A stretch of 64,000 bases of DNA, taken from NCBI RefSeq assembly GCF_018977255.1, contig NW_024704758.1, forward strand, positions 5,642,001-5,706,000, in the 5' to 3' direction. The notes beneath the pieces were generated by a model that ran no database searches, was not told the origin of the DNA, and saw only the letters and a program-made list of their open reading frames with translations. Position numbers and translations under genes: made by a program. Every line of letters begins with the position of its first letter. Position 1 is the first letter of the stretch. Shown here piece after piece: positions 17,976 to 56,300 of this stretch. Origin of the DNA: Callorhinchus milii (taxonomy: Eukaryota).

Positions 17976-18404
17976 CTGTAACTTGTAATGTTACAGACCC
18001 AATAAGAGGCACTTTGAGGGCCTCATGGACAACCTCAACCATTAATTCAGCTCCGTCATCCTTAGATAGGTCAGCACACATCCAAACGCTGCAGTTTACA
18101 CTGAACATCCCATTATTCTTCCGCACATAGTGGGGCATCACAGCAGTGAAGGAGCCATCTTCCTCACAGCCCTCTGTGACATTTTCGAGGGGAACACTGG
18201 CCGTCTTAGCTTCCTGTGGTTCCCCGTCTTTCTTTGGGATCCGCCAATGAAAGACTTTCTTTTTCTTCTGCTCCCCTTTCCTTTTCACAAAGGTAACAAT
18301 GGAGATGGCCCGTGGGCTGAAGCCAACAACTGCCCAGCTCAGGCTGGCCAGCTCCCCGGGCGTGATCTCAGAGGGTTTCTTGATTTCAGTGATTTGGGGA
18401 GGAA
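17976..18404 (-). CDS. Gene B post-TM Ig-like domain 5
   Basis: 429 nt, AG/GT; VPPQITEI...[10 protein letters not shown]...GMFSVNC...[12 protein letters not shown]. Confidence 0.88.
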
Positions 18405-21400
18405 CTAGAAAACAATAATGAGTGTTAGATGGACGCAGTGGTGTAATTCTATAACATGATTCACTGTGACGAACAAACATGCAAAAATAAATCATCTCCT
18501 TCTGCATTTTCTTTTAAATATCTTCTTCGGATTTAATATAAATTTTATGTGGAAAACATGATTGTTGCCTCCTTAGTTGTAGCTCAACAAGGCAGCTGCT
18601 AATCTCAAATGTACTAGTAATCTAAAATTCGTATTGTCTCAAGAGCACCCTGATTCAATTCATGAGCAGGGTGAAACCTTAGGCAAATTTCCTTACTCCA
18701 CACTACTCTGTAGCAGTAAGTAGGAACCCGGTTATTAGTCGATTGGAGGATCACTTATCCATCAAATTTTTTAAAAAAAATAACAATAATTTAGTCATTC
18801 CACGACTATTTGAGGGACACTGCTGTGCGCTGCCTGGTTTCACCCACCAAATGTACAGTCAATTCACTTTACAGTATATTCTGTGAAGTTCTTTGAGACG
18901 TCTCGAAGATTTGATAAGGTGTTATATCAAATGCAAGGATTATTATTATTAAATTAAATCCGGAACAACAACCGATAAATAATCACTCAACATTGCAGAG
19001 GATACCAGGCAAATACAGCAGAATGGGGATAAGCTGAAGTTTATCAGTTGTCAAAAAATACACTACTTGACACATGTCATGAAATAGACATACATGAAGA
19101 GGATCACCACAGAACCATGCACTTTGACACATGTGTACCTTTCATACAATCACACACATCACTAAACATGTACGTCATTAAAACCACATACCTCCACACA
19201 CGTGTACTTCATCGTACAACTACACACTTCAGAATACGTGTCAACACACATACATGAATGCAGCTCTTACCTCCTGTAACATGTAATGCCATAGTTTTAG
19301 TGAGAGGAGTCTTAAGAGCCTTGTGATACACTTCGACAATTAGCTCAGCTCCATCATCCCTGCACATATCAGCAGTCATCCAAATGCTGCAGTTTACACT
19401 GAATGTCCCATTGTTCTTCCTCACACAGTGGGGTGTCACAGTAGTGATGGCGTCATCTTCTTCACAGCGATCCCTCACGTCTGTGAGAGCAGTGCTCCCC
19501 ATCTTTGCTTCGTCATCTATTCCTCCATTCTCTGGGATACGCCAGTGAAACAGCCTCTTCTCTTTCAGCTCCCCTTTCCTCTTCAGCAAGAAAACAATGG
19601 AAATGGGCTTTGGAGTGAAGCCGGTGACTGACCAACTCAGACTGGCCACTTCACTATGTTTAATCTCGGGACGCAAGTCAATTTCAGTCACCGTAGGAGC
19701 AACTATAAAACAGACATAAACGGGTAAGGCTGGTATTAATGAACACTCAAGAAACATGCTATAGAATTCCTAGAGACTTGTTACCATGTCAGATGGTAAT
19801 ATATCAAGTAGTGACAGATGCAAATTACGAACTAAATCTACTGCAGCCCTTCAGCAATTGGGACCCCACAATGTTTGTTGGGGTAACTGTTAGCAAATGG
19901 TCTTCTCGGATAATACTGATCATCAATCCAATAAGAGACCATTTGGGCTTTGCCATCAGGACATGTCAATACTTAGGTCGTACCTCTCCCACCGTCTTCA
20001 CTTTGTTTCCACTAATGGTTTTTCCTCCAGTCCCCGCACTTTCTCGTGCGGTGTCCCTCAGGGCTCTGTCCTCGGTTCCCTCCTCTTCACCCTCTATGTG
20101 CTCCCCCTTGGTGACATCATCCGCAGACATGGGGTTAACTTCCACATGTATGCAGATGACACCCAACTCTACCTTTCCTCCTCTACCCTCAACTCCACGA
20201 CCACCGATGTCCTGACAGCTGCCTGTCCGACATTGAGTCCTGGACGAGAGACAACTTTCTTCAGCTCAACATGCGTAAAACTGAGGCCCTCCTGATTGGC
20301 TCACGTCAGCGCCTCCGCACCTCAGGCGCTGACAGCATCAGCATCCAAGGCTGCACTCTCCACCTCTCAAAGCCAGTCAGGAATCTTGGTGTTCTGTTCG
20401 ACCCTGAGCTGTCCTTTCTCCCTCATATCCGCGCCACAACTGGCACCGGCTTCCATCACCCCCGGAATGTCGCCAGACTACAGCACTACCTCATCCCTCA
20501 CGCTGCTGAAACCCTGGTTCACGCCTTTATCACCTCAAGGCTGGACTACGGGAACTCTCTCCTCACCGGCCTTCCCGGCACCTCCCTCCACAAGCTACAG
20601 GTCATTCAGAACTCTGCAGCTCGTGTACTGTCCCGCACCAGGCTTCGGGACCACATCACTCCCACCCTCGCTCGCCTCCACTGGCTCCCCATCCCCCAGA
20701 GGATCGAATTCAAGATCCTCATCCTCATCTACAAGGCCATTCACGGCCTCGCTCCCTCCTACCTCTCCGACCTACTATCCCCCTACCTACCTGCCCGTAC
20801 CCTCCGTTTCTCTGGCTCTGGTCTGCTTCACATCCCCCGCCCCAACCGCCCTACCATCGGTGGTCGGGCCTTCAGCCTCTCAGCCCCTAGGCTCTGGAAC
20901 TCTGTCCCCCAGTGCCTTCGCCTTGCTTCCTCCCTCTCCTCCTTCAAGGCCGGTCTCAAGACCTTTCTCTTTGACCGAGCCTTCAGCTCCCCTCTCGACT
21001 CTCTACCCCCTCCTCGCTCCCTCCCTTCCCTCCCCTCACCCTGACCATTTCCCCCTTGCTCGGGTCCTGACCCAACTGTACAGCGCCTTGGGACGTCCTC
21101 CCGACGTAAAAGGCGCTCTATAAATGGAATCTTGTTGTTGCTGTTGTACTACCATCACAACTGCCTGACAGATATTGCTCGGAATGGCAAATTAATCTCC
21201 AGGAGTTATCCCAAAGTACACTCTGGCGATCCCAAACCTACGCTCTGGACAATATGTGCCAAACATTCTCTGGAATTAGACAAGCAGAGTGCATCCCTGT
21301 GCTGTAATTGCTATGATTCTATTTTTCAACATGTGGGTATTGTTGGGTGGGAGAAGGTTGCAGAAGCCAAACCTTACCTCCGACAATGACCAACTTCACA

Positions 21401-24400
21401 GATGAAGCGAGTGGATTCTTAAGGGACTCATGGTGAACTTTCAGTGTGACTTCAGCGCCGTCATCCTCGGATGCGTCAGGACAGATTATTATCATGCCCT
21501 TCACACTGAACGTCCCATCATCCAGCTGAACGCACTTTGAGATTGAAGCAGTAATGGAGTCTTCTTTCTTATTCCCATTGAGTATACATGATGAGTTTAA
21601 GAGAAGACCTTTTTCATCATATTCTAGTGGGTCTTCATTCTTTTTGAAATTCCACTCATATAATGGCTGTGGTTCCTTTCCTTTTCTCCTCACTATTAAA
21701 GTAATGGTTATCATCCGGGGGGTGAACCCAGTAACTTCCCAGCCTGTACGAGACTCCTCACCATGCTTAAACTGGTCAGTTTTGCTCAATTCACTGATCC
21801 GAGGAGGAACTAAAATGGAATTAAAACAAAATCGGCATTACATTTTAAGTCTCTCACATACAACATTGGGTTCTAATTTGTGGTGTTCCTTAAGGGGTTC
21901 CATCAGAATTCCAATTGACCTTTGATAACTCTACGCTGGAATAACTCCATATTGGAGGTTTCCTCTGGTTTGGTGAGTCAGACATCAAGAGTCTTAGAAA
22001 GAAACCCCTTTTGGCTAACATTGATTGCTTACGAAGGAATTCCATAAAGAATAGCACAAATTTGACCCCGTTTTCCAGCTACACTGATAAGAGCTTGGGC
22101 ATTGGAGAGGGATGAAAGGAGGTTTACCAGGATGGTACCAGAAATAAAGAACTTTAGTTATGAGGAGAGGTTAGCGAAACTAGGATTATACCCCCTAGAG
22201 CAGAGAAGATAAAGAGGGGATTTAATAGAGGTTTTCAAGATCATGAGAGGATTTAATAGGTTAATCTGGGAAAAACTGTTTCCACTGACATGTAGGTCAG
22301 TAACCCGAGGACTCCGATTTAAGATGGCTGTTAAAAGAAACAGAGGGGAGGTTAGAAAAAAAATTTCATCCAGTAAGTTGTTTGGATCTAGAATCCATTA
22401 CCTGAACCTGTAGTGGAAGCCGATTCAATAAAAACGTTTAAGAGAGAAGTAGATGGGTATTTGGGGAGGACGGGATTGCAGGGTTATGGAGAGAAAGCGG
22501 GCCAGTGGGATTGAGTTGGATTGCTCTTTTAGGAGCCAGCACAGACGTGATGGGCCGAATGGCCTCTTTCTGTGCTGTATAATTTTATGATTCTTTGATA
22601 CACACATTGGGCAAGTTTCCTTATTCAACAGCCTCTGTTCACCCAGCAGTAAATTGGAACCCAGTTGTTAGTTGATTGGCGGATCCCTTTTCCGGGGGTA
22701 ATAATCCCTTCAAAAAACAATTTTGGTGGGCTATTGGCTGCCGTGTTTCGCTAGTGTCACACTACACAGTCACACTATACAGTCAATTCACCTTACAGTA
22801 TATTCTGTGAAGCTCATGTCCCAAATGCAAGGATTATTATTATTTAACTGCTTTAAGGTGCAGAATTTGTTCAGTGAAATACTAATGCAGCTGTGATCTA
22901 ATCATATACAAGACCTTGTATGTGGACAATAAAGTCCATCTTGTGTCAATTTTATTCAGACACTTGTCACTCATGTGACACAGGAGAAGGAATATCAGGT
23001 CCATGTCATCTGATGGCAAGTGATTTACAGCACAGGTTTGTGCTGGGACACAGGTTAAGGAGATCCCCACAATCACTCACAGTAATTAATAATAATGAGA
23101 GACATAACTGACCTCATGTTCATCAACAGACAATGGTGCTGGTTTATATCACTGCGGTTCCCAACTCTTAGTCCCTGTCAACTATCTACACTAAATTTCC
23201 CCCAACAGCTCCTCATCCCATTTCTGTATAGTCATCCCTGGGGTTCACTGAGGCAATCACTGTATCACTCCATCCTTTGGCCTCAACTATTTCCTATCTG
23301 AATAACATCATCCATTGATAATGCAGACAATTCTCACACATAGAATCTTTAATCTGTTTCAGTGTTTTCCCATATATCACATCTGCATAAAGCCTCTTTG
23401 ATTCGCAGGATTGCTATCTCAATGCCTGTCAACAGATCCTATGAGACACCATTCGGTTACTGTAAGGAGTTCTTTCTTACTCAGTTTCCTTCGTAAGGAA
23501 CTGGTTAATCAACATATTTTTGCCCCCCTTATGCCTTCATGTGGACATCTCATTCTGCTGATTGCTTGCAGCAACAGATATTACACTACCATTTAAAATC
23601 AAATAACTGAATCTTATCTCCTTCTTTCTTGGTCCCTTTAATTTGTTTCTTGCAGCAACAGCAAAGTACTAATAGAAGCAACAATATCAAAGATACACCA
23701 CCAACGACACCTGCAGAAGCCATTCCTTACCTCTGGCAATGACTAACTTCACAGATGGAGTGAGTGGCTTCCCAAGGGTCTCGTGTTGAACTTTCAATGT
23801 GACTTCAGCGCCGTCATCCTCGGATGCGTCAGGACAGACTGTTATCGTGCACTTCACACTGAACGTCCCGTCAAACAGCTGAATGCACTTTGCGATTGCA
23901 GCAGTAATGGAGTCTTCTTTCTTATTCCCATCCAGTACATATGATGAATTTAAGAGAAGACCTTCTTCGTCATATTCTAGTGGGTCTTCATTATTTTTCA
24001 AATTCCACTCATATAATGTCTGTGGTTCCTTTCCTTTTCTCCTCAGTATTAAAGTAATGGTTATCATCCGGGGGGTGAACCCAGTAACTTCCCAGTTCAT
24101 ACAAGACTCCACACCATGCATAAACTGCTTGGGTTTGATCAATTCACTGATCCGAGGAGGAACTGAAAAGGAATTAAACAAAATCGGACATTACAGTTTA
24201 AGTCTCTCACATTCATTATTGGGTTCTAATTTGTGATATTCTTTAAGGGATTGCATTAGAATTTCAATTGACCTGTGATAACTCTACCCTGGAATAACTC
24301 CATACTGGAGCATTCCGCTGGTTTGGTGCAACAGACATCAAGGGTCTTAGAAGGAAATCCCTTTTGGCTACCATTGATTGCTTACTAAGGAAATCCGTTA

Positions 24401-27400
24401 AGAAATAGCATAAATTTGACGCCGTTTTCCAGCTACACTGAAGAGAGCTGGGGCATTGGAGAGGGTGCAAAGGAGGTTTACCAGGATGGTACTAGGAATG
24501 AAGGACCTTAGTTATGAGGAGACGTTAGCGAAACTAGGATTATTCTCCCTAGAGCAGAGAAGATTAATAGGGAAATTAATAAAGGTTTTCAAGATTATGA
24601 GAGGAACTGATAGGTTGAACCGGAAAAACTGTTTCCACTGGCATGTGTGTCAGTAACCTGAGGACATCAATTTAAGATGGTTGTTAAAAGAAACGGAGGG
24701 GAGGTTAGAAAAAATGTTTTCACCCAACGAGTTGTTTGGATCTCGAATGCATTATCTGAAAGGGTAATGGAAGCCGAATCAATAAAAATGTTTAAGAGAG
24801 AAGTAGATGGGTATTTGGGGAGGACAGGATTGAAGGGCTATGGAGAGAAAGTGGGCCAGTGGGATTGAGTTGGATGGCACTTTTAGGAGCCGGCACAGAC
24901 GTGATGGGCCGAATGGCCTCTTTCTGTGCTGTATGATTTTATGATTCTATGATATACACATTGGGGAAGCTTCATACTCAACACCTTCTGTTCACCCAGC
25001 AGTAAATTGGAAACTAGTTGTCAGTCGCTTGACGGATACCTTTTCCGGGGATAATAATCCCTTCAAAAAAAATAAATTTGGTGGTCTATCGGCTGCCGTG
25101 TTTCGCTCGTGTCACACTACACAGTCACACTATACAGTCAATTCACTTTACAATATATTCTGTGAAGCGCATGTCTCAAAATGCAAGGATTATTATTAAT
25201 ATTTAATTGCTTTAAGGTGCAGAATTTGTTCAGTGAAATACTAATGCAGCTGTGATCTCGTCATATACAAGACCTTGTATGTGGACAATAAAGCCCATCT
25301 TGTGTCAATTTTGTTCAGACACTTGTCACTCATGTGACACAGGAGAAGGAATTTCAGGTCCCTGTCATCTGATGGCAGGTGACTTGCAGCACAGGTTTGT
25401 GCTGGGAAACAGGTTAAGGAGATCCCCACAATCACTCACAGTAATTAATAATAATGAGAAACATAACTGCACCTCATGTTCATCAACAGACAATGGTGCT
25501 GGTTTATATCACTGAGGTTCCCAATTCTTAGTCCCTGTCAAATATTTACACTAAATTTTTCCCAACAGCTCCTCATCCTATTTCTGCATAGTCATCCCTG
25601 GGGTTCACTGAGGCAATCACTGTATCACTCCATCCTTTGGCCTCAACTATTTCTTATCTGAATAACATCATCCATTGGCAATGCAGATAATTCCCACACA
25701 TAAAATCTTTAATCTGTTTCAGTGTTTCCCCATATAACACATCTGCATAAATTCTCTTTGATTCTCAGGATTGCTATCTCAAAGCCTCTCAGCAGATCCT
25801 ATAAGACACCATTTGGTTACTGGAAGGAGTTCATTCTTACTCAGTTTCCTTCGTAAGGAACTGGTTGGAAAGCAACATATTTTTGCCCCCCTTATGCCTT
25901 TATGTGGACATCTCATTCTGCTGATTGCTTGCAGCAACGGATATTGCACAACCATTTAAAATCAAATAACTGAATCTTATCTCCTTCTTTCTTGGTCCCT
26001 TTAATTTGTTTCTTGCAGCAACAGCAAAGTACTAATAGAAGCAACAATATCAAAGATACACCACCAACGACACCTGCAAAAGCCAATCCTTACCTCTGGC
26101 AATGACTAACTTCACAGATGAAGTGAGTGGCTTCCCAAGGGTCTCGTGTTGAACTTTCAATGTGACTTCAGCACCGTCATCCTCGGATGCGTCAGGACAG
26201 ATTGTTATTGTGCTCTTCAAACTGAACGTCCCGTCATCCTGCTTAACGCACTTTGCGATTGCAGCAGTAATGGAGTCTTCTTTATTATTCCCATCCAGTA
26301 CATATGACGAGTTTAAGAGAAGACCTTTCTCGTCATATTCTAGTGGGTCTTCATTATTTTTCAAATTCCACTCATATAATGGCTGTGGTTCCTTTCCTTT
26401 TCTCCTCACTAATAAAGTAATGGTTATCATCCGGGGGATGAACCCAGTAACTTCCCAGTTCATACGAGACGCCACACCATGCTTAAACTGGTCGGGTTTT
26501 CTCAATTCACTGATCCGAGGAGGAACTAAAAAGGAATTAAAATAAAATCGGACATTGTGTTTTAATTCTCTCACATTCAATATTGGGTTCTAATTTGTGA
26601 TGTTCTTTAAGGGTTTCATTAGAATTCCAATTGACCTGTGATAACTCTACCCTGGAATAACTCCATATTGGAGCATTCCTCTGGTTTGGTGCAACAGACA
26701 TCAAGGATCTTAGAAGGAAACCCCGTTTGGCTATCATTGATTGCTTACTAAGGAATTCCATTAAGAAATAGCATAAATTTGACCCTGTTTTACAGCTTTA
26801 CTGAAAAGAGCTGGGGTATTGGAGTGGGTGAAAGGAGATTTACCAGGATGGTACCAGAAATGAAGGACCTTAGTTATGAGGAGACCTTAGCGAAACTAGG
26901 ATTATTCTCGCTAGAGCAGAGAAGATTAAGAGAGGATTTAATTGACGTTTTCAAGATTATGAGAGGATTTGATAGATTGAACCGGGAAAAACTTTTTTCA
27001 CTGGCATGTGGGTCAGTAACCCGAGGACACCAATTTAAGATGGTTGTTAAAAGAAACAGAGAGGAGGTTAGGAAAAATGTTTTCACCCAGCAAGTTGTTT
27101 TGATCTGGAATGCATTACTTGAAAGGGTAGTGGAAGCCGATTCAATAAAAACGTTTAAGAGAGAAGTAGATAGGTATTTGGGGAGGACAGGATTGCAGGG
27201 CTATGGAGAGAAAGCGGGCCAGTGGGATTGAGTTGGATTGCTCTTTTAGGAGCCGGCACAGACGTGATTGGCCAAATGTGCTGTACGATTCTACGATTCT
27301 ATGATACACGCATTGGGCAAGTTTCCCTACTCAACACCCTCTGTATGTGGACAATAAAGTACATCTTGTGTCAATTTTGTTCAGACACTCGTCACTCGTG

Positions 27401-31477: not shown

Positions 31478-31542
31478 CGTGGAGGGGTTTGTGACCCCCA
31501 ACGCGGTCCCTCTCCTCCTTCCAACGGCAGCGACTGAGCCGC

Positions 31543-35911: not shown

Positions 35912-35958
35912 TCATTTGAATCTCCCACTGTGTTGTGTTTGGCGAGATGCTGATTCAC
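35912..35958 (-). CDS. Gene A terminal coding exon, copy 2
   Basis: Duplicate of 41260-41306; ATTAAA at 35451-35456. Confidence 0.55.
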
Positions 35959-36904
35959 CTGTGGAGACAAATTTCAGAGAAAGTTATTGCTCAGAAAGGG
36001 TTATTATTGGGTACAAACATATTTATATACTTAACATCCATGAAGTGAATTATACCCATGGTGCTGATCGGGAGGTGAGGTTTGTTTATATTCTTTATTG
36101 ATTACCAGGGTTTCTCATGTCTCAGTCCAGACAGTTCATACACACAGGGCCCCAGAGACCAAATGGAGCAGCACAGCTACTGGAAACTGGAATTTCAAAT
36201 TGATTTACATGCTGTGAGTTGGCACATTTGTTGTTAAAGTTCAAACATTGCTGAAACAGGCTGAGTATATGTATGGGCTACTAATCACAAGATAGAGAGA
36301 GAGGAGAAAGAGAGAGAGAGGCAGGCCAAGGAAAAGAAACTGAGAAGTAAGAGACCACATGAGCTCACCCAGGGGAAAGGTAACTGATCACTGCTACTTC
36401 TGAGTTTGTCACTACTTTATCTGGAAACTTGGATACTGTCTGGTACGTGTATAACCATTGTCTTCAGAACTTATTTAATAAAGGAAACTGGAATTTGAAA
36501 TTGATTTACTTGTGGAGACAATTTGGGAGAATCTTATTGTTCAGCAATGGATTTTATTGGGACAAAAATATCTATATACCTAACATCCTTAAAGTGATAG
36601 ATAACCACAGTGCTGATCAGGGGGTGAGCTTTGATTATATTTTTCACTTATTACCAGGAATTCTTCTGTCTCAGCTCAGACAGTCAACGTGGGCAGGAGA
36701 TTCACACACAGAGACCAAATGGACAGCACAGCTACTGCCTCGGTCAGATCAGATCCCAGAACAGCACTTGAAACTTAGAGCTTCTGACCTGAGAAGCTCA
36801 ACACTGCACTGAGCAGTGACTTCAGCTGCTGGGCCATCGGGGAGCAAATCATTACAATATCCTAAACATTGTCACAGAGCACGAGAGACAGAGAGGACAC
36901 CTAC

Positions 36905-37336
36905 CTCCCGTAACGTGTAATTTTAACTTCTCAATGAGAGGTTCACAAACACCAAGAGCCTCGTGCTGAACCTGAACAGTTAATTCAGCTTCATTATGCC
37001 TGGACACGTCAGGAGTCACGGTGATGCTGCACTTTACTCTGAAGGTTCCGTCTTTGTCTTTTTCACATTTGGGCACCTGAGCAGCGAACGAGGCATCTTT
37101 ATTGCGTCCATCTGATAGGTGTTTGAGAGAAAAGGCACTTCCCTTCCCTTCAAATGTTTTCTTATCTTGAGCTTCCCAATGAAACAGTTGCCTAATTTGC
37201 TCTCCATTCCTCTGTAGACTGGAAATAATCGACATTTTCCCAGGAGTGAACCCAGTCACTGCCCATTGCAGCTCGGTTTTCTCACCGTGTTTAATTTCCT
37301 TGGGCTTGGACTCAATTGTAGTAATTTTAGGAGGAA
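36905..37336 (-). CDS. Gene A post-TM Ig-like domain 8 (third copy of the domain-6 exon)
   Basis: 432 nt; same protein as domain 7; flanking introns match those of 43397-43828. Confidence 0.72.
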
Positions 37337-39410: not shown

Positions 39411-39735
39411 ATAATAATATAGTAATAATCCTTGCATTTGATATAGCGCTTTTCACGTCGGGAGGACGTCCCAAAGCGCTTCACAGAACACACTGTAAAG
39501 TGAATTGACTGTATATTAGTGGGCGAACGCAGCAGCCAATTGCGCACAGCAATGTCCCACAAACAGTCGTAGATTGAAAATGACCAATTTAATTATTGTT
39601 TTTGTTTTTTGGAGGGATTATTATTAGGCGTGTGGAGTAAGGAAACTTGCCCAAGGTTTCGCCCTCTGCCTGGAATTGAACTCAGGTCCTTCGCTTGCAA
39701 CGCGAGTACTCTAACCACTGAGCTACAGGACTCCA
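39411..39735 (-). mobile_element. Full-length tRNA-derived SINE, same family
   Basis: Inserted at cagaacaa|aggttaag, which is empty in the duplicate at about 35130. Confidence 0.9.
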
Positions 39736-41259: not shown

Positions 41260-41306
41260 TCATTTGAATCTCCCACTGTGTTGTGTTTGGCGAGATGCTG
41301 ATTCAC
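41260..41306 (-). CDS. Gene A terminal coding exon, copy 1 ([15 protein letters not shown]-stop)
   Basis: Acceptor tttgtctccacag|GT GAA TCA..., in frame with phase-1 donors, TGA at 41260-41262; ATTAAA about 470 nt downstream (40789-40794). Confidence 0.6.
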
Positions 41307-44300: not shown

Positions 44301-47300
44301 CTTGCTTATAATGCCTATAAGCAATGTGAGTGACCTTAAAGCATGGTTGTTTGTAACTCTCATAATGCTTCACACACAATTTATAATCTAAGTCTTCAGC
44401 AAAGCTTCAGAAAGAGCTTCACACTATTACAGAGAACAGCAGACAATGCTGCCGGCTGATGCTGAGCGGGACCATGACCACAGAGTCACATCACTTATCC
44501 ATCAACCTACAACAGAGCTGCTCCCAAACACAACTACAACTCATCCTGCAAAATGTACACACTGTAATATTGTTACTCAGAGTACTTATATCCTCTGCAC
44601 AGTGTGTTGACAGTATTGAGGCTGTTCCTTCCCAGCTGCAAAGACGTGACCCTTGGATGAGATGTTAAACCAAAGTCTTGTTTGCCTGTTCAGTTGGGCA
44701 TTAAAGATCCTGTGGCACTATTCAAAAAGAGAAGGGAGTTCTCCCGGTGTCCTGACCAACAATCGCTGTCAAGAAATTGGTTCACCGCTTTGGCTCTTTG
44801 TGAGACATTGCTGTGTGCAATTGTGCTGCCACATTTGCCTAAAAATACGCAGTCACTCCATTTCACAGTGAATCTTGTGAAGCACTTTGAGATGGTCCTC
44901 CAGACATGATAAGGCATTGTACCAAAAGGCAAGGATTATTATTTTAGTCCTGTAGCATATTGGTTAGAGCTGACGTGTATCAAGCAACAGGACTCGGGTT
45001 CAATTCTCATACAGTGCAAAATCTAAATTTCCTTACACCACACACCTGTTTACTTAGCAGTATGTGATTGTTGATGGTGGATTGGAGGATCACATTCCAG
45101 GGTTAATAATCCCTCCAAAAAAAAAAATAATAATAATTTGGTCACTCAATCCACGATATTTGTGGGACACTGCTGTGAGTAATTGGCAACCGCATTTCAA
45201 ATCTATTTCTGTGTCAAGAAAACTGGAAATCAAATCCACAGAAACAAGTGAAAAGCCTGCACGTCATGGCAAAAGGCACCAGGCTGGAACTGTAGAATGG
45301 TGTTAAACTCCATCATAAGCGCACAGCCCGTCTGAGCCTCCAGTAATCTGCAAGAGCTGCTCCCAGACAGAGTGTACACTGTCTTTTGGGCAAATAAATA
45401 ATTGAAAGCTCTACATTTTATCCCAACTGAATACAAGAGAAAGGAAGAGAGAAAGTGAGGGAAGAGGGACAGAGAGAGAGATGCACCACACACAGGGAGA
45501 GAGAGATAGAGGAACAGCACAGACTGCAGTGGCATCCGAGTGTAAGGAAAGAGTTTAACTGAAAGTTATGTGTGAGGAAAATGACTTTCAGGAGATATGA
45601 GCTAATTTATCTCACAGATACCGTTGATTTTGTTCACGCCCTGACCTTAAAAAGCTGATTTATCTTCGGTGGCCCTCCTCTTCGACCGTGCTTTCGATCA
45701 CCCTGAATCCCACCCTGCCCCCCACACTCCCCAATCCTGATCCTCAGCTCAGGTCCGAAACACTGACTGTCCAGCGCCTTGAGACGTCCTCCCAACATAA
45801 AAGGCGCTATACAAATGTAATTTTGTTGTTGTTGTCATCTCACAGATAGTGTTTCTTGGTACATCTACTGCCTATGAGCAAGATGAGTGACCTTAAGGCA
45901 TGATTGTTTGTAACTTCTGCAATATGGCAATGTGCACTTAACCTGGGAACAAGCTGTGAGTTGGCACATTTGGGGTTAAAGTTGAGTCATTGCCGAAACA
46001 TGCTTTGTATGTGTATGAGCTGCTAACACACGAGTGAGGGAGAGCGAGCAACCAAGGAAAAGAAACTGAGAAATAAGAGACTGCCTGAGCTCTCCCAGGG
46101 GAAGCTCTCCCAGTTTTCATTGACTTGAGAACTTCTGCAATAAAGGAAACTGTCATTTGAAATTGAAACCATTGTCAACAATCAAATTCTTTATAAGATA
46201 TTATCAACTCATTTCCTTATTACAAGTCACTGCATTAGATTGTAAGTTCAGGTCCCGATGGGATGTGAAATCACAACCTCCTGGACAAGAGATAACAGTT
46301 CTACACGTTCCGAGCCAACACCCATATTTATGTATATATAATGGTGAAATGTGTTACATTTTAATATTATGTATTTGTCAGAAATTATCAGATTATTTAT
46401 CACCCTGTATAAAATAATAAATCCACTTTAATCATGTGGAGCCCCGAATAAAGCCTCTCTTCACAAACAGCTTCAACGCTCACTTGAGAGATTAACAGTT
46501 CATTTCAAACGCTCCTCGTTGGCAAAATCATAACCTTTACCTGAATATTTCTACAGTGATGTGTGAGGGAGAGAGAGAGAGGAGACCAGACAGAGGCAGC
46601 ACTTACCCCCTTTAACATGTAATGTTACACATTTGATGAGCGATTCCTTCAGAGTCATATGTTTAACATTAACAATGTATTTTGTAGGCGAATTCAGCAG
46701 CCACATGCACACTGCAATGTCCCAGAAATTGCCATTGAGTGAGTGGCCAATTTTAGTTGTGGGATTGTTGTCCTGGACTCTGGGAGAAACTCCCTTCTCT
46801 TTTCGAATAGTGCCGATGGGTTCTTTAATATCCACCTGAACACGCGGGTGGAACCTTCGTTTAACATCTCGTCCAAAGTATAGCACTTCCAACAATGTAG
46901 CAAACCCCAGCAGCGCATTGGAGTGTCAGCTTAGACTATGTGATTCCAAGTCCTGACGTGGGGCTTGAACCCACAACCTTCTGACTCAGAGACAAAAGTG
47001 CTACCACTGCTTCAGGCTGACATACAAATGGAGCAGCACAGCCACTGCCCCAGGTCAGCTCAGATCAGCTCCCTGCCAACCGCACTCAAAGCTTAGAGCT
47101 TTTGGCCTGAGAGGCTCAACACTGTACTGAGCAGTGACCTCAGCTGCTGGGCCATCGGGGAGCAAATCATTACAATATCCTGAACATTGTCACAGAGCAC
47201 AAGGGACAGAGAGGACACCACACTGATAGCAGAACCTACCTGGAATAATGTGCAATATTACACTCTTCACGATAGAGGCATCAAGAGCCTCATGATGAAC

Positions 47301-50300
47301 TTCAACAGTTAATTCAGCTCCATCATGCAAGTTTATATCAGGAATCACATTGATGATGCAATTTACTCTGAAACTCCCATCTCCAATAGGTTCACATTTT
47401 TGCTCCTCAGCAGTGAAGGAGACAACTTGATTGTCTCTATCCGATCGGTTCTGGAGAGGAACATTTCTTCCTTTAAACTCTTGAAATGTTTCCTTTTTTG
47501 GAATTTCCCAGTGAAACAGTCGCACTTTTTGCTGTTGCTCTTTCCTCCTTAGACTAAAAACGATGGCCATTGCTCCAGGAGTGAAACGAGTCACTTGACA
47601 TTGCAGTGTGTCTTTCACACCATGCATAATTTGCTTGGGTAGTATGGGTCCATTAATTTCAGGAGGGTCTGTAAAACAGAAACATGATATAAACATTGCA
47701 GCATTGCACTCAGCGGGACTTGAACCCAAAACCTTCTGACACAGAGACATGAGCGGTACCAACTGCACCAGGCTGACACATAAACACAGCACCCAGTGGA
47801 ACTGAAACAAAAATGAGTCCTGTGTCATTTACATTCTGTTATATTGTTACTCTGAGAGTCTTTCGCCCACAAACACGTACAGTCAATTTACTTTGCAGTA
47901 CATTCTGTGAAGCGCTTTGAGACAATAATAATCCTTGCATTTGATATAGCGCCTTATCATGTCTTTGAGAGGTCTCAATGCCCTTCACAGAATATACTGC
48001 AAAGCAAATCGACTCCACTTTTTGTTGACAAAAATCGGCAGCTAATTGCGCACAGCAGTGACCCACAACAGTCGTGGATTGAGTGACCAAATTATTATTG
48101 GGTTTTTTTCAGGGAGTATTATCCCCAGAAAAGCGATCCGCCAATCGACTAACAAATAGGTTCCTGCTTATTGCAAGGTAAACAGAGGCTTGTGGAGTAA
48201 GGAAACTTGCCCAACATTTCAGCCAGGTCTCTCGCTTGAGTGGCAAGCGAATTAACCACTGAGCTACAGCACTTGGAGATGTCTCAACGATGTGATAAGG
48301 CGCATATCAAAATGCAAGGATTATTATTATTATTTATATCCTCTGCACGGTGTGCATAAAGGCTGTTACTTTCCAGCTGCAAAGATCTGATCTGCCCGAT
48401 ATCGTGAAGGTGAGAGATGTCCACAGTGCTGAACAGGAGATGAGCTTTGCTCATTTCATCTATTAATTACCATGTCTCAGCCCAGACAGTCAATGTGGGC
48501 AGACGATTCACACACGGAGACCAAATGGAGGAGCACAGCTACTGCCCCACCTCAGCTCAGTGCACCTGGGGGGAGGGGGGAAGCGTTGGTGGGCGGGGTC
48601 TCCACTGAGATGAGCTGGCTACAAGATGCTAATAATCTTTATAATCCTTGCAACTGATATAACACCTTAACATATCATCCAGATGTCTCACAGCGCTTCA
48701 AAGGATTTTAAAGTGAAGTACATTGACTGTGTATTTGAAGGGAGAATGTGTCAGCCAATTTGCACACAGCAGTGTTCCACAAACAGCCATGAAGTAAGTG
48801 ATGCATTTTATTTGGGAGATTGTTGGCCAGGACATGGGGACAAACTCCCTTCTCTTTTTGAACAGCTTGAGAACGGAATATTGGAATCCAGTCAATCCTC
48901 TGGAACAGTCTTGGAAGTTAAGTTCCCGATCCAAGTGGCTTCACAACAATCCAGAGCACTGCTGATTATAAACCAGCAGCCTGGCTCGTCGACAGGCCTC
49001 AGACAGGAAGACCAGTGACTGGAATCAGGGATTCTACCCACTCAGATCTTGGTAATCCTGAAAGCCAAAGCCTTAACAAGTAGTGCAGTCCTACCTGGAA
49101 ACAGCAAGCTATGTGCGTTTCCCTTGTTAAGCTCCAGCAGTATCCCAGCGCACACTCAGGGGTCCCCAAGCTATGCGTCTTGCCAACCTGCACCAAATAC
49201 TCTCTGGTATTAGGTAAGTAGGATGCATAACTACTGTGAGCGTTCCATTCTAAACACGGGGAAGTTTCCATGCGTAACTGGCATATATGAACTGTCTGGT
49301 TTGGATACCCTGAAGCACGGTGACGGGTTTTCTCAAATGCCAGACACCCGGCTGTCCAAAATAAACAGATCAGTGACCAGAGCTGCACATAGCCAGCGAC
49401 TTTCTGACCGGAGAGGCTCAGGGCTTCACTGAATGGGGACCTCAGTCGTTGGATCATCGGGAAGGAAACTGTTACTTTATCCTAAATATTGTCACAGAGC
49501 ACGTGGTGCAGAGAGGACACAATACTGATGGCTGAACCTACCTCCAGCAATGTTTATTCTTAAATGCTCAGTGACAGGCTCAGGCAATGCCTCATGATTA
49601 ACCTGAACAATTAAAACAGCTCCATCATCCGTGGACTCATTAGGAGTCATAACGATTCTGCAAGTAACTCTGAAGGTTCCATCTTTGGTGTCAGGTTCAC
49701 ATTTGGGCACCTCAGCAGTGAAGGCGGCATCTTTATTGTTTCTATCTGATCTGTCCTCAAGATGAAAGGATTTTGTTGAACTTCGAAATGCTTTCTTATT
49801 TGGAATTTCCCAGTGAAACAGTTGTCTTAGTGGCTGTTCTTTCCTCTGTAGACTGGAAACAATCGATATCGTCCCAGGAGTGAACCCAGTCACTGCACAT
49901 TGCAGCTCAGCTCTCTCACCATGTGTCATTTTCCTGGGTTTCGTAATTGTAATTTTAGGAGGAACTACAAAACAAAATGACAAACCCGATGGAAACATTC
50001 AAATCTATTTCTGTGTCAAACACAAACTGGAAACCAAATCCACAGAAACCAGTGAAAAGCCTGGACGTCATGGCAGAGGGCCCCAGGCTGGAGCTTTAGA
50101 ATGATGTAGAATGACATTAAACTCCATCATAAGCGCACAGCCCGTCTGAGCCTCCAGTAACCTGCAAGAGCTGCTCCCAGACAGGGTGCACTGTCCTTTC
50201 AACAAATAAATAATTTAAAATTCTCCATTTTATCCCAAATGAATACAAGGGAAAGGAAGAGAGAAAGTGAGGGAAGAGGGACAGAGAGAGATGCAAAGCA

Positions 50301-53300
50301 CAGGGATTGAAAGATAGAGGCCCAGTACAGACTGCATTGGCATCATATTGTCAGGAAAGAGTTTAACTGAAAGTTATGTGTGAGGAAAATGACTTTCAGG
50401 AGACATGAGCTAATTTATCTCACAGATAATGTTGATTTTCTTCACTCCCTGACCTCAAAAAGCTGACTTATCTTCAATGACCCTCCTCTTTGACCATGTT
50501 TTGAATCACCTTGCTTCTCCCGCCTACCCTCCACCCTCCCCAAACCTGACCCCCAGCTTAGGTCCGAAACACTGACTGTCCAGCGCCTTGGGACGTCCTC
50601 CCGACGTGAAAGGCGCTATGCAAATGTAATTATGTTGTTGTTGTTATCACACAGATAGTGTCTCTTGGTACATCTACTGCTAATGAGCAAGATCAAGTGA
50701 CCTTAAGGCATGGTTGTTTGTAACTTCCGCAATGTGCACTGAATCTGAGAACATGCTGTGATTTGGCACGTTTGTGGTTAAAGTTGAGTCATTGCAGAAA
50801 CATGCTGTGTATAAGTATGAGCTGCTAACACATGAGTGAGAGAGAACGAGCGATGAAGAAAAAGAAACTGAGAAGTAAGAGACTGCCTGAGCTCTCCCAG
50901 GGAAAGGGTAACTGATCACTGCTACTTCTCCTGATTTAGTTACTACCTTATCTAGAAACTTAGATACTGTCTAGTATGTGTATAACCACTGACTTAAGAA
51001 CTTCTGTAATAATTTTATCCCAACTGAATACAAGAGAAAGGAAGAGAGAAAGTGGCAAAGTAAGAGAGAGAGAGAGAGAGAGAGAGATGCACACACAGAG
51101 GGAGAGAGAGGTAGAGGACAAAACATTGGGAGAAATTCCCTTCTCTTTTAATGCTATGGGATTTTTAACATTTAGCTGAACACCAAGACGGGATCATGGT
51201 TTAACATCTCAACTGAAAGACTCCAGCATTGCAGGGCTCCCCCAGCTCACACTGCAGCGTCATCCTAGATTGTAATGAAGGAAATTATTATTTGAAATTG
51301 AAACCATTGTCGACAACCAAATTCTTTATAAGATATTATCAACTCATTTCCTTATTACAAATCCCTACACTAGACTGTAAGTTCAGGTCCTGATGTGAAC
51401 TCACAACTTTCTGGACAAGAGATAACAGAGCATATATAATAGTTTCAAATATTATATTTTAATATTATGTATTTGTCAGAAATCACCAGATTATTTCTAA
51501 TCTACAAAATAATCCATGTGATTGTGGAGCCCTGAATAAAGCCTCCCTTCACAAACAGCTTCAACTCTCCCTCTGGAGATTAACTGTTCATTTCAAACTC
51601 TCCTCGTTGGTAAAATCATTTGCTTCACCTAAATATTTCTACAGTTATGTGTGAGGGAGAGAGGGAGGAGATCAGACAGTGCAGCACTTACCCCCTTTAA
51701 CGTGTAATGTTCCAATTTTAGCTTCCTTCAGAGATCCCTTCAGAGCCTCGTGTTTAATTTGAACAATCAACTCAGCGCCATCATCCCTGGATACATCAGC
51801 ACACATGGTAACGTCGCACCTCACACCGAAAGTCCCAGTTGTTCTCTGTGTAATCACCGCCATCGAGGGAGTGATGGAGACATCCTGTGTGAGAGAGGTA
51901 ACTGGAATGCCTACTGGCTTGTTTCCTGCAGGTTGTTCTTTCTCTATCGTCTGCCAATAAAACAGTTTCTCTGGTGTCTGCTGCCCTTCTCTCTTCAGTA
52001 ATACAGCAATTTCAATGGGCCGTGGATTGAACCCAGACACTGACCAACTCAGAGTGGAGCAATCACAATGTGTCATGTCAATGGGCAGATGGATATCAGT
52101 AATTGTGGGAGGAGCTATAAAACAAACACAAGCAGCAGATAAAGATTAAATCCAGTTCCAGGACACACCGCACTGCCTCACACACACTTTACAATGTAAA
52201 CCTGCAGCAACACTTCAGAGTTACACAATATTACAACAATAGCAACTTCCATTTACACAGCAGCCTTTGTGCAGTGTAGTGTCTTGGAGCGTTTTTGAGT
52301 GCTTAACAATAGCGTAGTTTGACACTGAGGTGGGGAGAGTGGGAAGGTGATGGAAGGCAGCGTCAGAGAGTAAAACTCTTCAGGTATGATCTGAAGGGGG
52401 ATAGAGGGAGGCAATGTGGAGGGTTGAGGTAGGGAGATCCAGAGGTTCAGGGTATTGTTGCTGAATGCCAGGCTGCGGATGGTATAGTACAGGGGGTCAA
52501 GGGACATGTAGACGACCTGAGCAAATGACGGCAGTGGGTTGAGGAGTGGATGTGAGCAGGTTGGAAAGGTAGAGAGGTGCTCTGGCAAGAACAACAGGAT
52601 TACAACAAGATTACATTTGTATGGCGCCTATCAAGTCGGGAGGACGTCCCAAGGCATCCCAAGAAGTGATTTGTAGGCGAGTGTGAGGATTTCAAAATTG
52701 ATTTGTTTAAGTTACTCAAGTCAGATAACGTGTCAGAGTGATTTACAGTGATGGGTTCGTACACTGAGCATGGGTACAGGGGGGAGGGGGAAGCGACCAT
52801 AGGTATGGTCGCCTATGTGACAATACATCACTGTCACTACAAAAGTAACCATTGGTTCACAACTGATTGCAGGATAGAGGGACACATACAGTCACACGCC
52901 TGTACTACAACTCACAGATATAAGTGCCACATGGAGAGAGGAGACCACACAGAGATAGAACTTACCTGCAACATAAAATGTTACACATCCAGTGAGAGGA
53001 TTCTCCAGAGCCATATGTTTAACTCTAACAGTGAATTCAGCACCATTATCCCTGGATACATCAGCACACATGGTAACGCTGCAATTCACACCGAAAGTCC
53101 CTGTATCTGTCTGTTTTATCTTTGCCACCTCAGCAGTGAAGGAGTTAACCTGTGTAGTCTCCTTAACACTGGGGTTAATATCTGATGGGATTGTCTGCTT
53201 TTCTTTCTCTGGGATCTGCCAATGAAAGAGTTCCTTTGCTTCCTGATCCACTTTCCTCTTCACCAATACAGCAATTTCAATGGCCTGTGGATTGAAGCCA

Positions 53301-56300
53301 TTAACCTCCCACGTCAGAGCCACCTTGTCACCGTGCACAATACCAGTGGGCATCTTGATTTCAGTCATTGTGGGAGGAACTGTAAAACACAAGCAGCAGG
53401 TCAACATTATACTGTAATTCTGTAACAAGCCACACTGTGCCCAGCTACAAATCATAAAATCAATCCAGGGGCTCACACTGAGGTCTCACATTGAGCCCCT
53501 GGATTCCGCTTGGTCTTCAATATCAGGCTGGGCGTCAGGAGCACTTTTAGTTGCTCGCTGAGCTGCCTCCCTGTGCCCTATACCCGTGTCCTCTGCCCGT
53601 GCCCTCTCCTCAGGGCCCTCTCCCCAGGGCCTCTTCCACTGACTTCCAGTGTGACAGCATGTGACGAGTTCTCAGGCTGCTCTAAACTGACATCTAGGAG
53701 CTTCCATGTAACTCCTGATGACATGATCCAAAGTATAAAAGTGGTATGAACACAAACGGTCTCTCTGTGTTTTTATGTCTCCTCACACTCTCTATCTGTT
53801 TCCCCCCACAATCTACTTTCGTCTCTCTCCAAAGCTGAGAGAGAGAGAGAGAAAAAGAATAATACAGAGCGAAAGAGAGAGCGACAGACAGTGAGAGTTA
53901 CAGAGAGAGTCAGGTAGCGTCTATATTGCTAGGGGTGAAGGGGAAGTTCTCAGATTCCAATTGAAACACTCACAACCTTCTGACCCAAAGGCGAGTGTTA
54001 CCAACTGAGTCAATCTGTCACCTGAACTCACAGGGTTAATGGAGCATAAAATATGTCACGAGGTAACTATCTCAGCTGAGACAGTAACAATGTTCCAGGT
54101 GATTTGAAGAAGTGTTGAAGCAGCATGTCAATACGATCGGGTAAGAGAGAAGAGAAGAGAATTATGATGAGAGGAGATAGCTCGAGTGGAGGAATGAGCA
54201 ACAGTATAGGTGTAACAACAACAGAGAGAGCTGGGAAAACTCAGGTCAGGCAGCATCTATGGAGAAAGGAAAGTGAGTCAACGTTTCGGGTCCATGACCC
54301 TTCGTCAGAACGAAACGTTGACTCACTTTCCTTTCTCCATAGATGCTGCCTGACCTGCTGAGTTTTCCCAGCTCTCTCTGTTTTTGTTTCAGATTCCAGC
54401 ATCTGCAGTATTTTGTGTTTTGACCAGTATAGGTGTGATGGGGTGAAAGGCCCTCTGTGCTGTAATTATAAATGATAATGATAATAATTCTTGCATTTGA
54501 TGTAAATCCTTATCACATTGTTGAGACGTCTCAAAGCCCTCCACACAATACACCGTAAAATGTATTGACTATATTTTATGGGCAAAACGCAGCAGCCAAT
54601 TTCACACAGTAGTCGTGGATTGAGTGGCCAAATTAGTATTATTTTTTGTTGTTGGAAGGGATTATTAACCCTGGATTTCTATGATTCTATATATTCCGAA
54701 TGTTTGAACACCGACATGTAGGTGTTGCTGGGCGGGGGTGGGTGGATAGAGGTTGCACAATCCAATTCTTACCTTCAACTTCGAATTTTACAGATTTTTC
54801 GAGAGGCGTTTTCAGAGTCTTGTGATGAACTTTTACAGTCATTTGAACTCCGTCGTCCTCAGATACATCAGGACAGAATCCTATCAGACACTTTACACTG
54901 AAGGTCCCATTTTTGAGCTGAACACATCGTGGGGGCTCAGCAGTGAAGGAATTCACCCTCTCACATCCATCTTTTATATCTACGAGGGGAACACCTTCTT
55001 CAATCTGACATGACCTCTTTTCATCCTTTGGGAATTTCCAGACAAATAACGTCAGTTGTTCTTTTCTTTTCCTCGTCAGTAATACCACAATCTCTATCTC
55101 TTTTGCTTTGAATCCAGTAACTTCCCAACTCAGATCGGCACGCTGCCCATGTATAAAGTGAGTGGGTTTGTGGATTTCAGTGATCTTGGGAGGAGCTGTG
55201 AAACGTACAAAAAGTAGCATCAAATATTCAAATTCTCTAAAGAAACCTGAGTAATAATCAACACATTTACAACAACAATTTGCCCTTATATACCACCTTG
55301 CCAACATTGATACTTTCTCAAAGCACTTTATAGGAACTTTACAGTGTTCATCACTGAGCAAAGGGGCAAGAGAAAGCAGGGGAATGGTGACAGTGACCAA
55401 AAGCACAATCAAGCAGGTAAGTTTCTAGAAGGGATTTGGGTAAGCAGTCCAGAGAGCGGAGGCCTAGACACAGCCTTTCGCTATGTCATTAGCACAATAT
55501 TTGTTTCAGTTGATCATTGTGTCGGCTGATAGTTCTCTGTTGATAGAAAATGTGCACAAGAGCATTTAATGTTCAATAATTCACCGCCACATTTGCCATT
55601 GTACTTTAGGACTGTGAAGATCCTTACCTTGATTCCATTTCTTCCAAAAGCCAAATGCCGCTACAGCAAGGAGCACAATCACCAGCAGGCCAACGACACC
55701 TCCAATAACAGCTCCAGGCCCATTTCCTGCAGGTTCCTGTGGTTTCTTAACTACCACAGTCAGCTCTGCCTCCAGTGTAAAATTATCACTGAATGCTCTG
55801 TGCATCACCACACATCTGTACTTATCACCATCGTCATCCAGGGTTGGTGTGAGCCTCAACAGGTTGGAAACGCTGAATGTTCTGTCCCCGTTGGTAACTA
55901 CATCTTGTGTGAAGATACCTGTTGTAACCTCCATCTCCACACCACGTGATACCTTGACCCAGCTGATCTTGTGCGTCTGAGGGTAAAATCCATTAACATT
56001 ACACGTCAAAGTCACAACTGAATCGTTGATTACGATGATGTGACGTGGAGACACGGTGACCTTTGGCTGAGCTGTAGAGATCATAAAAATGCACTATATG
56101 AATACTCTCTTTTGGAGCAGCATTGTTATCTTCTAACCATAAGATACACACCAGTGACAACAACAACAATTTGCACTTATGTAGTGCACGCCATGCAGGC
56201 TAGAGTCTCAGAGCGCTTAACACTGGCGGAGCTTGCCTCCGAGCCAGTGGAGGGGGGAGGTGCCCATCAGCATGGTCGAAAAGGAAGGTTTTCAGGCAGG

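Follow-up and report, generated by a model that had tools for sequence, protein, structure and literature searches.

Predicted cytosolic arrays of C1-derived immunoglobulin repeats in a tandem cluster of B7-H6-like genes of Callorhinchus milii

Introduction

B7-H6, the product of NCR3LG1 (natural cytotoxicity triggering receptor 3 ligand 1), is a stress- and tumour-induced ligand of the natural killer (NK)-cell receptor NKp30, and the control of its display is partly understood. The human protein has 454 residues and a short cytoplasmic tail without immunoglobulin (Ig) domains. Multi-copy clusters of the B7-H6 gene in cold-blooded vertebrates were reportedly described by Flajnik and colleagues in 2012. 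Here we analyse 64,000 nucleotides of the genome of the elephant shark Callorhinchus milii (RefSeq assembly GCF_018977255.1, contig NW_024704758.1, positions 5,642,001 to 5,706,000; this whole stretch is called the window, and its first letter is position 1). Judged by similarity, the genes of the window are B7-H6 (NCR3LG1)-like and form a tandem cluster, in which the exons for the transmembrane (TM) helix are followed by 13 repeated exons for an Ig-type domain, D1, that probably lies in the cytosol.

The layout of leader, IgV, IgC1 and TM segment is shared by B7-H6 and the window genes, but the latter carry 5-8 Ig domains after the TM segment, and one of them, gene B, is without a V exon. [quoted passage not shown] D1 resembles them in its hallmark motifs, in the His of VxH and in the use of one phase-1 exon per domain. 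Unlike them, it has neither the disulfide between the B and F strands nor the pin Trp of the C strand, measures 138-144 rather than about 100-107 residues, stands after the TM helix, and has an extra C′ strand with an invariant Trp and an insertion of 25-30 residues.

Ig domains in the cytosol are familiar from titin, obscurin and palladin, tandem rods of the reducing compartment in which a disulfide is not obligatory. These domains are of the I-set, not C1, and do not belong to membrane proteins with an immune-type ectodomain; no sequence relationship of D1 to muscle or cytoskeletal Ig domains was detected in Pfam and PDB profile searches. The nearest functional analogy is offered by the butyrophilins (IgV-IgC-TM-B30.2), which likewise combine a B7-related ectodomain, one TM segment and a large folded cytosolic domain; the B30.2 domain of BTN3A1 senses an intracellular ligand and signals inside-out. 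The tail module of the window genes is, however, an Ig domain and not PRY/SPRY, and no B30.2 (PRY/SPRY) match was found in any tested D1 or tail domain at E values up to 1. A cartilaginous-fish gene of the Ig superfamily with tandem C1 exons is shark UrIg2, in which VJ together with nine domains of C1 type precedes the TM segment; its C1 exons are tandemly duplicated and near-identical, and each of the domains has the canonical disulfide and pin Trp (PMC12227049). Its structure (9dmx) is among the fold matches of D1, whereas the D1 repeats follow the TM segment and have neither disulfide nor pin Trp.

Organization of the D1 exons

Gene models were predicted from splice sites, profile matches and public protein models, and three tandem genes, A, B and C, were reconstructed on the minus strand (Table 1). 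When the V and C1 domains of gene A were compared with the PDB, the human B7-H6 chains 3pv6, 4zso and 6yjp ranked first over their full length (E 2.7e-21 to 1e-20), followed by CD276 (B7-H3). Gene A runs from leader, IgV and C1+TM exons through D1 copies A1-A7 to a terminal exon with the stop; beyond this lie A8 and its own duplicate terminal exon, so that gene A has seven or eight copies. Gene B consists of leader, C1+TM exon, five copies (B1-B5) and a 14-nt terminal exon. For gene C the window holds a V exon and a C1 exon of 107 residues, and no D1 exon was seen there.

All 13 D1 exons stand downstream of the two C1+TM exons. They measure 414-432 nt, and in 13/13 a polypyrimidine/AG acceptor and a strong GT donor flank the exon, acceptor and donor alike in phase 1; the splice sites of TM, D1 and terminal exons are all strong and phase-compatible. 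The region marked out by the initial annotation, which was made from the letters of the window alone, begins and ends at exon edges (17976, the 3′ end of B5, and 55195, the 5′ end of A1). Several public protein models chain these exon types. P0011 joins a gene A-type TM segment straight to an A1-type exon (...FGFWKKWNQ/APPKITEI..., the slash marking the junction; 90% identity), P0003 runs through A4, A5 and A6/7/8 to the terminal exon (97-99% identity), and P0004 joins A4, A7/8 and the terminal exon. The C. milii model XP_042197527 is 95.8% identical to B4 and 89.7% to B5 and has the same DGGN stop, with a 5′ part from a paralogue. The encoded proteins end 4-15 residues past the last repeat, with no other recognisable motif.

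Residues of the disulfide and core

The initial annotation had proposed that all 13 post-TM domains have lost the Ig disulfide and exchanged a core Cys for Trp. Its residue counts, which we repeated by aligning the 13 copies and reading out their codons, were for the most part reproduced. The YxC of the F strand is replaced by [MFLV]x[VL] in every copy. At the B-strand Cys position, 11 copies have Trp (codon TGG), and A4 and A5 have Cys (TGT). The E-strand motif G[TSM]Fx[VL]xC ends in Cys in 11/13 (Ser in B1, Gly in B3), and a further Cys is found about 8 residues ahead of the Gly of this motif in 10/13 (absent from A2, A3 and B5). The repeats are indeed longer than the C1 exon of gene C, and the three true C1 exons retain the B-strand Cys, pin Trp, YxC and His. 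As to the pin Trp, said to have become aliphatic, it is missing from all 13 copies, but only six have an aliphatic residue; the others have Ser, Phe or Thr (V,V,V,S,F,S,S,S,L,L,L,F,T at the Gly of GF +10). This column was read from the GF motif as anchor; hmmalign of D1 to the ectodomain-C1 profile covered half of each domain because of the insertion.

The C′ Trp of LFxW and the position after the TM segment are common to all 13 copies. These represent about 9 independent lineages rather than 13: A6, A7 and A8 are near-identical (dN 0.003), and B1, B2 and B3 are about 90% alike (dN ~0.07-0.12). The chance of an open frame over 143 codons is about 0.001 per exon. The residue pattern is far beyond chance, and the same pattern recurs in 78 domains of other species. 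In the D1 tree A4 and A5 are nested inside the Trp-type clade, and their Cys is therefore probably a one-base reversion.

Orientation with respect to the membrane

The gene models have a type I layout, with a cleavable leader exon, a single hydrophobic segment in the C1 exon and K/R-rich sequence after it. Net charge is -0.57 over the 15 residues before the TM segment and +1.89 after it, in keeping with the positive-inside rule. N-x-S/T sequons occur at 1.24 per 100 residues in the ectodomains (z=6.0 against composition-matched shuffles) and at 0.60 per 100 residues, the chance level (z=0.4), in the tail domains beyond D1. The ectodomain C1 domains retain the canonical Cys pair and the pin Trp in 47/47 cases. 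Among 92 C1-like tail domains beyond D1 in the same proteins, the F-strand Cys is lost in 31, the B-strand Cys in 12 and both in 1, that is, 44/92 broken pairs versus 0/47, and the pin Trp is retained in 92/92. The Cys state depends on the place in the tail and is shared from sharks to amphibians: Cys-Cys in D2 and D3, Cys-x in D4, Cys-Phe in D5 and x-Cys in D6.

A separate leader ahead of the repeats was also sought. Neither TM-to-D1 intron (genes A and B) contains an ATG-initiated hydrophobic open reading frame (ORF) with a phase-1 donor, and in gene A the intron before A1 is only 432 bp long. An in-frame hydrophobic stretch upstream of A1 (55353-55424) was considered as a hidden leader or second TM segment and rejected, as it has no ATG and no qualifying donor. 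The cytosolic topology to which the initial annotation had pointed is thus backed by leader and single TM segment, charge, sequons, broken Cys pairs and the absence of an alternative leader. We infer that the D1 tail is cytosolic and that its Cys residues are reduced.

Odd or even numbers of Cys were tried as a test of compartment and discarded. Odd counts occur in 57% of ectodomain C1 domains, 65% of D1 and 51% of tail domains (9/13 of the window copies), and the test does not discriminate because the ectodomain C1 of the family carries an extra conserved Cys. This third Cys, in a DICTG motif, is present in the extracellular C1 of most family members (3 Cys in 25/47 domains) and absent from the window C1 exons; it may serve an interchain bond.

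Occurrence in other jawed vertebrates

A profile of the 13 repeats was searched against 1.84 billion representative proteins and matched 372 at E <=1e-3 and 188 at E <=1e-10, from chimaera to alligator. Among the best 150 of the 372, of which 107 have exactly one internal TM segment, full-length D1 matches lie after the TM segment in 73 cases and before it in none. The median gap from TM segment to D1 is 11 residues, and the TM segment starts at a median residue of 252, which fits a leader, V and C1 ahead of it. Extracellular domains do not dominate the matches. The distinct C1-derived subtype that the initial annotation had envisaged is upheld by this 73 to 0 distribution and by a signature kept in 78 domains.

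These 78 D1-type domains were selected for having no F-strand Cys, and in its place the F-strand pair reads L/I/F/V x I/V/L. The C′ Trp is present in 69/78 and the E-strand Cys in 66/78; at the B-strand site there are 38 Cys, 30 Trp, 7 Phe and 1 Tyr. Named from 30 representative proteins, the hosts include horn shark, catshark, zebra shark, basking shark, manta, thorny skate, elephant shark, coelacanth, lungfish, bichir and reedfish and, among tetrapods, caecilian, newts, many frogs and alligator. Judging by these matches, D1 has been conserved in this gene lineage, as the domain that comes first behind the membrane, in hosts that range from cartilaginous fish to amphibians and alligator. In public databases the proteins are called 'uncharacterized protein' or, in alligator (by NCBI) and in Rhinophrynus and Polypterus (by depositors), NCR3LG1; beyond the similarity of the ectodomain, it is these source-given names of same-tail proteins that hint at orthology to mammalian NCR3LG1.

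Two forms of tail can be distinguished. In short forms (chimaera, sharks and rays, including the window genes) the tail is repeated D1, sometimes with acidic low-complexity linkers between the repeats. Long forms, from cartilaginous fish to alligator, have a single D1 followed by five to eight more Ig domains. Each of D2-D6 in LOC103174895, a long form of the elephant shark, scores above the Pfam C1-set cutoff (31.7-45.8 bits). The UniProt entry V9K7L7 (elephant shark) contains signal peptide, V, C1, TM segment, D1 and D2-D7 in one chain and differs from the genome model of LOC103174895 at 9/1079 residues (99.2% identical). From its accession series we take V9K7L7 to be transcript-derived and hence presumably independent support for the long-form architecture.

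In a word-indexed search that gave few matches, turtle and kiwi NCR3LG1 models (P0200-P0206, 263-393 residues) matched the V-C1-TM part of the alligator protein only. It seems from this that the Ig tail was lost, or left unannotated, in some sauropsids.

A separate group of giant 'uncharacterized' proteins, amphibian and other, stood out among the related proteins: P0007 (Dendropsophus, 2158 residues), P0018 (Bombina, 1744 residues), P0032, P0041, P0055, P0060, P0064, P0065 and P0070. They have a TM segment at about residue 220-350, then many canonical C1-like domains that keep the F-strand Cys, and no full-length D1 match was found in them. They look like a second set of proteins with post-TM Ig arrays.

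Loss and replacement of the disulfide

The systematic loss of the disulfide after the membrane, as first proposed, applies to the 13 D1 copies of the window; the long-form paralogues, one of them on the same elephant-shark scaffold, still have both Cys in D2 and D3 and lack one in D4-D6. The initial annotation had read the loss as an adaptation to the cytosol. Tail domains with both Cys fit relaxed constraint and hydrophobic back-filling better. Because the loss is not universal after the membrane, it does not look like a requirement of the cytosol; rather, it looks like relaxed constraint in a reducing compartment combined with back-filling of the core. The loss is frequent in tails and never seen in ectodomains, as is expected from relaxed selection on a bond that cannot form. 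By these alignments D1 is furthest gone, with the F-strand Cys and the pin Trp (left in 4/78) lost nearly throughout.

A change from Cys to Trp at the B-strand site takes one base from TGY, as do changes to Phe and Tyr. On the D1 tree the Trp state requires at least 5 changes, in the chondrichthyan short-form clade, in skate long forms and in two or three frog lineages. This recurrence gives indirect support to a core-filling role of the B-strand aromatic residue, which together with the C′ Trp would compensate for the lost disulfide and pin Trp.

The notion of a new Cys pair fared less well. Only one of the two Cys is present in 5/13 window copies, and both occur together in 8 versus 8.5 expected if they were independent. 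The D-strand Cys, found in just 9/78 domains of the family, is by this distribution specific to chimaeras. The E-strand Cys aligns with a position that in canonical C domains holds a small Ser facing the core (17/20 canonical-type matches) and is better seen as a buried small residue. In the structure model the two Cys appear to be two positions out of register.

Descent and fold of D1

Against the Pfam C1-set family (gathering score 21 bits), one of five D1 copies tested, of the A6 type, reaches 22.0 bits, and the other four give no match; a long-form D1 scores 17.6 bits and the true C1 exons 40.7-51.9. Profile searches were more telling. The 13-copy profile, compared with all PDB sequences, matched C1-set proteins only (IgM and IgG constant regions, beta-2-microglobulin and B7-H6), and a profile built from the extracellular C1 of 46 other family proteins matched 13/13 D1 exons at E 5e-10 to 3e-3. 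D1 also retains the hallmarks GFxP..I.I (B-C) and VxVxH..L..P (F-G), and has its exon phase and a (V/A)PP start in common with C1 exons. The C1 origin put forward in the initial annotation is sustained by both profile results.

An AlphaFold2 (AF2) model of A1 is a confident beta sandwich, with a predicted local distance difference test score (pLDDT) of 89.9 and a predicted TM-score (pTM) of 0.85. It has an extra strand at residues 47-54 that carries the Trp of LFxW, followed by the insertion at lower confidence, and short strands at 84-86 and 90-93. Foldseek returned Ig folds, with V domains (nanobodies) and shark UrIg2 the best PDB matches; nanobody TM-scores were 0.5-0.6, and the top values for V domains and UrIg2 about 0.55-0.58. 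The B-F disulfide, the C-strand pin Trp and the seven-strand ABED/CFG sandwich free of C′ and C″ that characterize a canonical C1 domain are all missing from D1. By sequence D1 is C1-derived and no longer a canonical C1-set domain; it has gained the C′ strand with its nearly invariant Trp, the insertion and the E-strand Cys.

Substitution rates and exon turnover

Ratios of nonsynonymous to synonymous substitution (dN/dS, omega), calculated by the Nei-Gojobori method, separate recent from older copies. For B1/B2/B3 omega is ~1.0 (dN 0.095, dS 0.093; intron flanks 0.06-0.13), for A2/A3 1.05 and for A4/A5/A6 0.87; B4/B5 give 0.27, and comparisons between repeat groups 0.51. The initial annotation had suggested dN/dS at core positions as a check. 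Computed per repeat pair, it indicates constraint on older pairs (0.27-0.51) and values of ~1 for recent copies, and when sites were split by model strands and loops there was no clear contrast among recent duplicates. By these ratios, D1 is constrained over long spans and new copies, despite their open frames, are under unusually weak constraint and drift almost neutrally, which fits redundancy within the array and possibly exon skipping.

Copies also get lost. Within 46554-46925 (-) a truncated D1 retains the F-G strands and donor (46608-46682), and the upstream part of this ORF is repeat-like. The 3′ end of gene A is duplicated (35912-44075), with three near-identical D1 exons (A6, A7 and A8) and two identical terminal exons, and a single N at 41154 falls between the latter. 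Either the segment was duplicated very recently or the assembly is at fault here.

Interpretation

We consider it fairly likely, at roughly 70%, that the window encodes B7-H6-like type I proteins with cytosolic tails of C1-derived, disulfide-free D1 repeats under relaxed constraint. Each gene would specify a leader, an IgV domain (except in gene B) and a canonical C1-set domain continuous with the TM helix. At a cytosolic site the B-F disulfide could not form and would not be selected for, and one or both Cys would drift to hydrophobic residues while the core stayed packed. At the B-strand site the large hydrophobic one-base neighbours of TGY (Trp, Phe and Tyr) would have been fixed repeatedly. 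Chimaeras and sharks would have amplified the D1 exon by tandem duplication, which is possible because its boundaries are symmetric (phase 1-1), with recent copies nearly neutral. Long-form relatives have five or more further, genuine C1-set domains behind D1.

A number of observations weigh against this account. In recent copies dN/dS is ~1, with divergence equal to that of the introns, and certain repeats may therefore be subject to skipping or decay. A V exon is missing from gene B, and the duplicated 3′ end of gene A adjoins the N at 41154, which may point to a locus that is in part degenerate or wrongly assembled. Among named public models the closest, XP_042197527, is close to B4 and B5 only, and a look-up of source contigs for P0011, P0003 and P0006 as transcript-level evidence found none on record. 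The rates, the missing V exon and the duplicated 3′ end, with the truncated remnant and the use of a subset of exon types by XP_042197527, would be expected if the repeats were decaying or unused pseudo-exons of a degenerating cluster and the Cys loss were decay devoid of structural meaning. We think this unlikely, as all 13 frames are open over 138-144 codons with intact acceptors and donors, the invariant framework residues are retained, the disulfide-less signature is found in 78 domains from sharks to alligator, older paralogue pairs have omega well below 1, and the AF2 fold is confident. Also to be set against the cytosolic account are D1 sequons slightly above chance (0.75 per 100 residues, z=2.0; mostly an NGT variant of the DGTF motif) and the long-form tail domains downstream of D1, half of which keep both Cys and all of which keep the pin Trp, a state that an oxidising compartment would also fit.

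Such data could be accommodated if the D1 arrays were extracellular or lumenal, through a separate secreted gene or a wrong topology, with the D- and E-strand Cys forming a substitute intrasheet disulfide; both Cys are present in 8/13 copies, the E-strand Cys is widespread in the family, often together with a neighbouring B-strand Cys, and D2 and D3 of long forms retain canonical pairs. That arrangement strikes us as distinctly improbable. The TM exon donor and D1 acceptor have the same phase 432 bp apart with no leader between them, V9K7L7 unites ectodomain, TM segment and tail in one chain, charge and tail sequons are those of a cytosolic tail, and the two Cys neither co-occur beyond expectation nor are both common in the family. 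Moreover, from the strand limits of the model (D 90-93, E 99-107), Cys91 would face Val101, two residues off Cys103. As for ancestry, D1 might be an unrelated V- or I-set-like module whose likeness to C1 is superficial: four of the five copies tested fall below the Pfam cutoff, the best structural matches are V domains, and the C′ strand and long insertion of the model are atypical of the C1 set. We give this very little credence, since every PDB profile match, B7-H6 included, is C1-set, the ectodomain-C1 profile reaches all 13 exons, the hallmarks, exon phase and (V/A)PP start are those of C1, and the domains behind D1 in long forms are C1-set by the Pfam cutoff.

If the cytosolic account is right, an array of 5-8 Ig domains could, speculatively, be a rod tens of nanometres long, and our guess is that, beneath a ligand for receptors of the NKp30 type, the tail serves as a rod-like scaffold or as a platform for docking. 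Pairing among C1-set domains is typical, and the tail may therefore bring ligand molecules together as oligomers or tether the ligand to a partner in the cytosol. If butyrophilins and their B30.2 domain are a guide, it might also, equally speculatively, couple intracellular state to ligand display. A broader proposal, to which we would give slightly less than even odds, is that the ancestral jawed-vertebrate B7-H6 lineage deployed the C1 set as large cytosolic arrays with D1 first, the first cytosolic use of C1, and that an NKp30 ligand with a folded intracellular scaffold or sensor was then lost in most amniotes.

The fold and the gene family are known; the C1-derived domain type and C1-set arrays after the membrane appear to be undescribed. 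In the literature searched, which did not take in Flajnik et al. 2012 and Ohta and Flajnik 2015, neither Ig domains in the tail of B7-H6 nor these LOC identifiers were found described. If correct, the D1 tails would be a natural experiment in the stability of Ig domains without disulfide and pin Trp, with a B-strand aromatic residue and a new C′ Trp in their stead, and would be relevant to designing antibody-like domains for folding within cells. The C1 set would no longer mark extracellular adaptive-immune molecules, which matters for genome annotation and for arguments on the origin of Ig, TCR and MHC, and an unexplored intracellular function beneath an NK ligand, as scaffold, oligomerisation device or sensor, would come into view.

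Features of the locus

Table 1. Exons of genes A, B and C in the window (slashes in motifs mark exon ends)
Feature	Position	Strand	Remarks
Gene A leader exon	61411..61483	-	phase-1 donor CAG/GTACAG; 93.7% identical twin at 31405-31477
Gene A IgV exon	57813..58154	-	Pfam V-set 27.8 bits; family V profile E 1e-29
Gene A C1-set+TM exon	55628..56071	-	Pfam C1-set 51.9 bits; Cys/Trp/YxC kept; TM then WKKWNQ; phase-1 donor AAG/GTAAGG
D1 A1, Trp-type	54773..55195	-	432 bp past TM exon; AF2 pLDDT 89.9; P0011 joins TM to this exon type
D1 A2, Trp-type, no D-strand Cys	52966..53379	-	
D1 A3, Trp-type, no D-strand Cys	51692..52114	-	
D1 A4, B-strand Cys (TGT)	49542..49964	-	P0003, P0004 map at 96-97%
D1 A5, B-strand Cys (TGT)	47240..47668	-	P0003 maps at 98.6%
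D1 exon remnant, F-G strands and donor only	46608..46682	-	D1 profile positions 118-142, E 3e-8
D1 A6, Trp-type	43397..43828	-	only repeat type reaching Pfam C1-set cutoff (22.0 vs 21)
D1 A7, near-identical to A6, A8	41704..42135	-	
Terminal coding exon after A7	41260..41306	-	same C-terminus as P0003, P0004
D1 A8, duplicate of A6/A7 unit	36905..37336	-	
Terminal exon, second identical copy, after A8	35912..35958	-	
Gene B leader exon, peptide as gene A leader	31405..31477	-	
Gene B C1-set+TM exon	28361..28804	-	Pfam C1-set 40.7 bits; Cys/Trp/YxC kept
D1 B1, Trp-type, E-strand Ser	26094..26525	-	
D1 B2, Trp-type	23731..24162	-	
D1 B3, Trp-type, E-strand Gly	21378..21809	-	
D1 B4, Trp-type	19271..19702	-	95.8% identical to XP_042197527 residues 427-570
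D1 B5, Trp-type, no D-strand Cys	17976..18404	-	
Gene B terminal coding exon, (D)GGN*	17470..17483	-	same C-terminus as XP_042197527
Gene C IgV exon, comparison gene	11519..11857	-	Pfam V-set 41.7 bits
Gene C C1-set exon, 107 aa, canonical Cys/Trp/Cys	10342..10662	-	Pfam C1-set 46.1 bits

The gene B leader lies inside a 316-bp stretch with 93.7% identity to the gene A leader region. No match to the V profile was found at 28.8-36.9 kb, and none between leader and C1+TM exon; gene B would be either V-less, with a C1-only ectodomain, or a degenerate copy. The C1 exon of gene C carries no TM segment in the same exon, and a gap of 131 N (9589-9719) lies just downstream of it; this gap or its surroundings may hold the TM exon of gene C.

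Downstream of gene C, at 2270-4495 (-), there is a tandem repeat of ~950 bp in about three copies, whose long ORFs on the minus strand are rich in Gly, Ser, Thr, Glu and Lys (such as ...ATPDSQGTGRKGGNGGGGKSDTQTDG... and ...NVTATEMTNSEATGANGEAGNPDAQTVEDKSSEKSEK...). These resemble the acidic low-complexity linkers between the D1 repeats of the shark relatives P0001, P0008 and P0028; gene C may use them as tail exons.

The window has a G+C content of ~42% and contains reverse-transcriptase fragments of long interspersed nuclear elements (LINEs) and fragments of short interspersed nuclear elements (SINEs). The introns are filled by long LINE reverse-transcriptase-like ORFs and SINE-like copies at 19709-21148 (+), 58188-59501 (-) and 60004-60736; a LINE fragment is present in the intron that separates B3 from B4, and a second one between the leader and the V exon of gene A.

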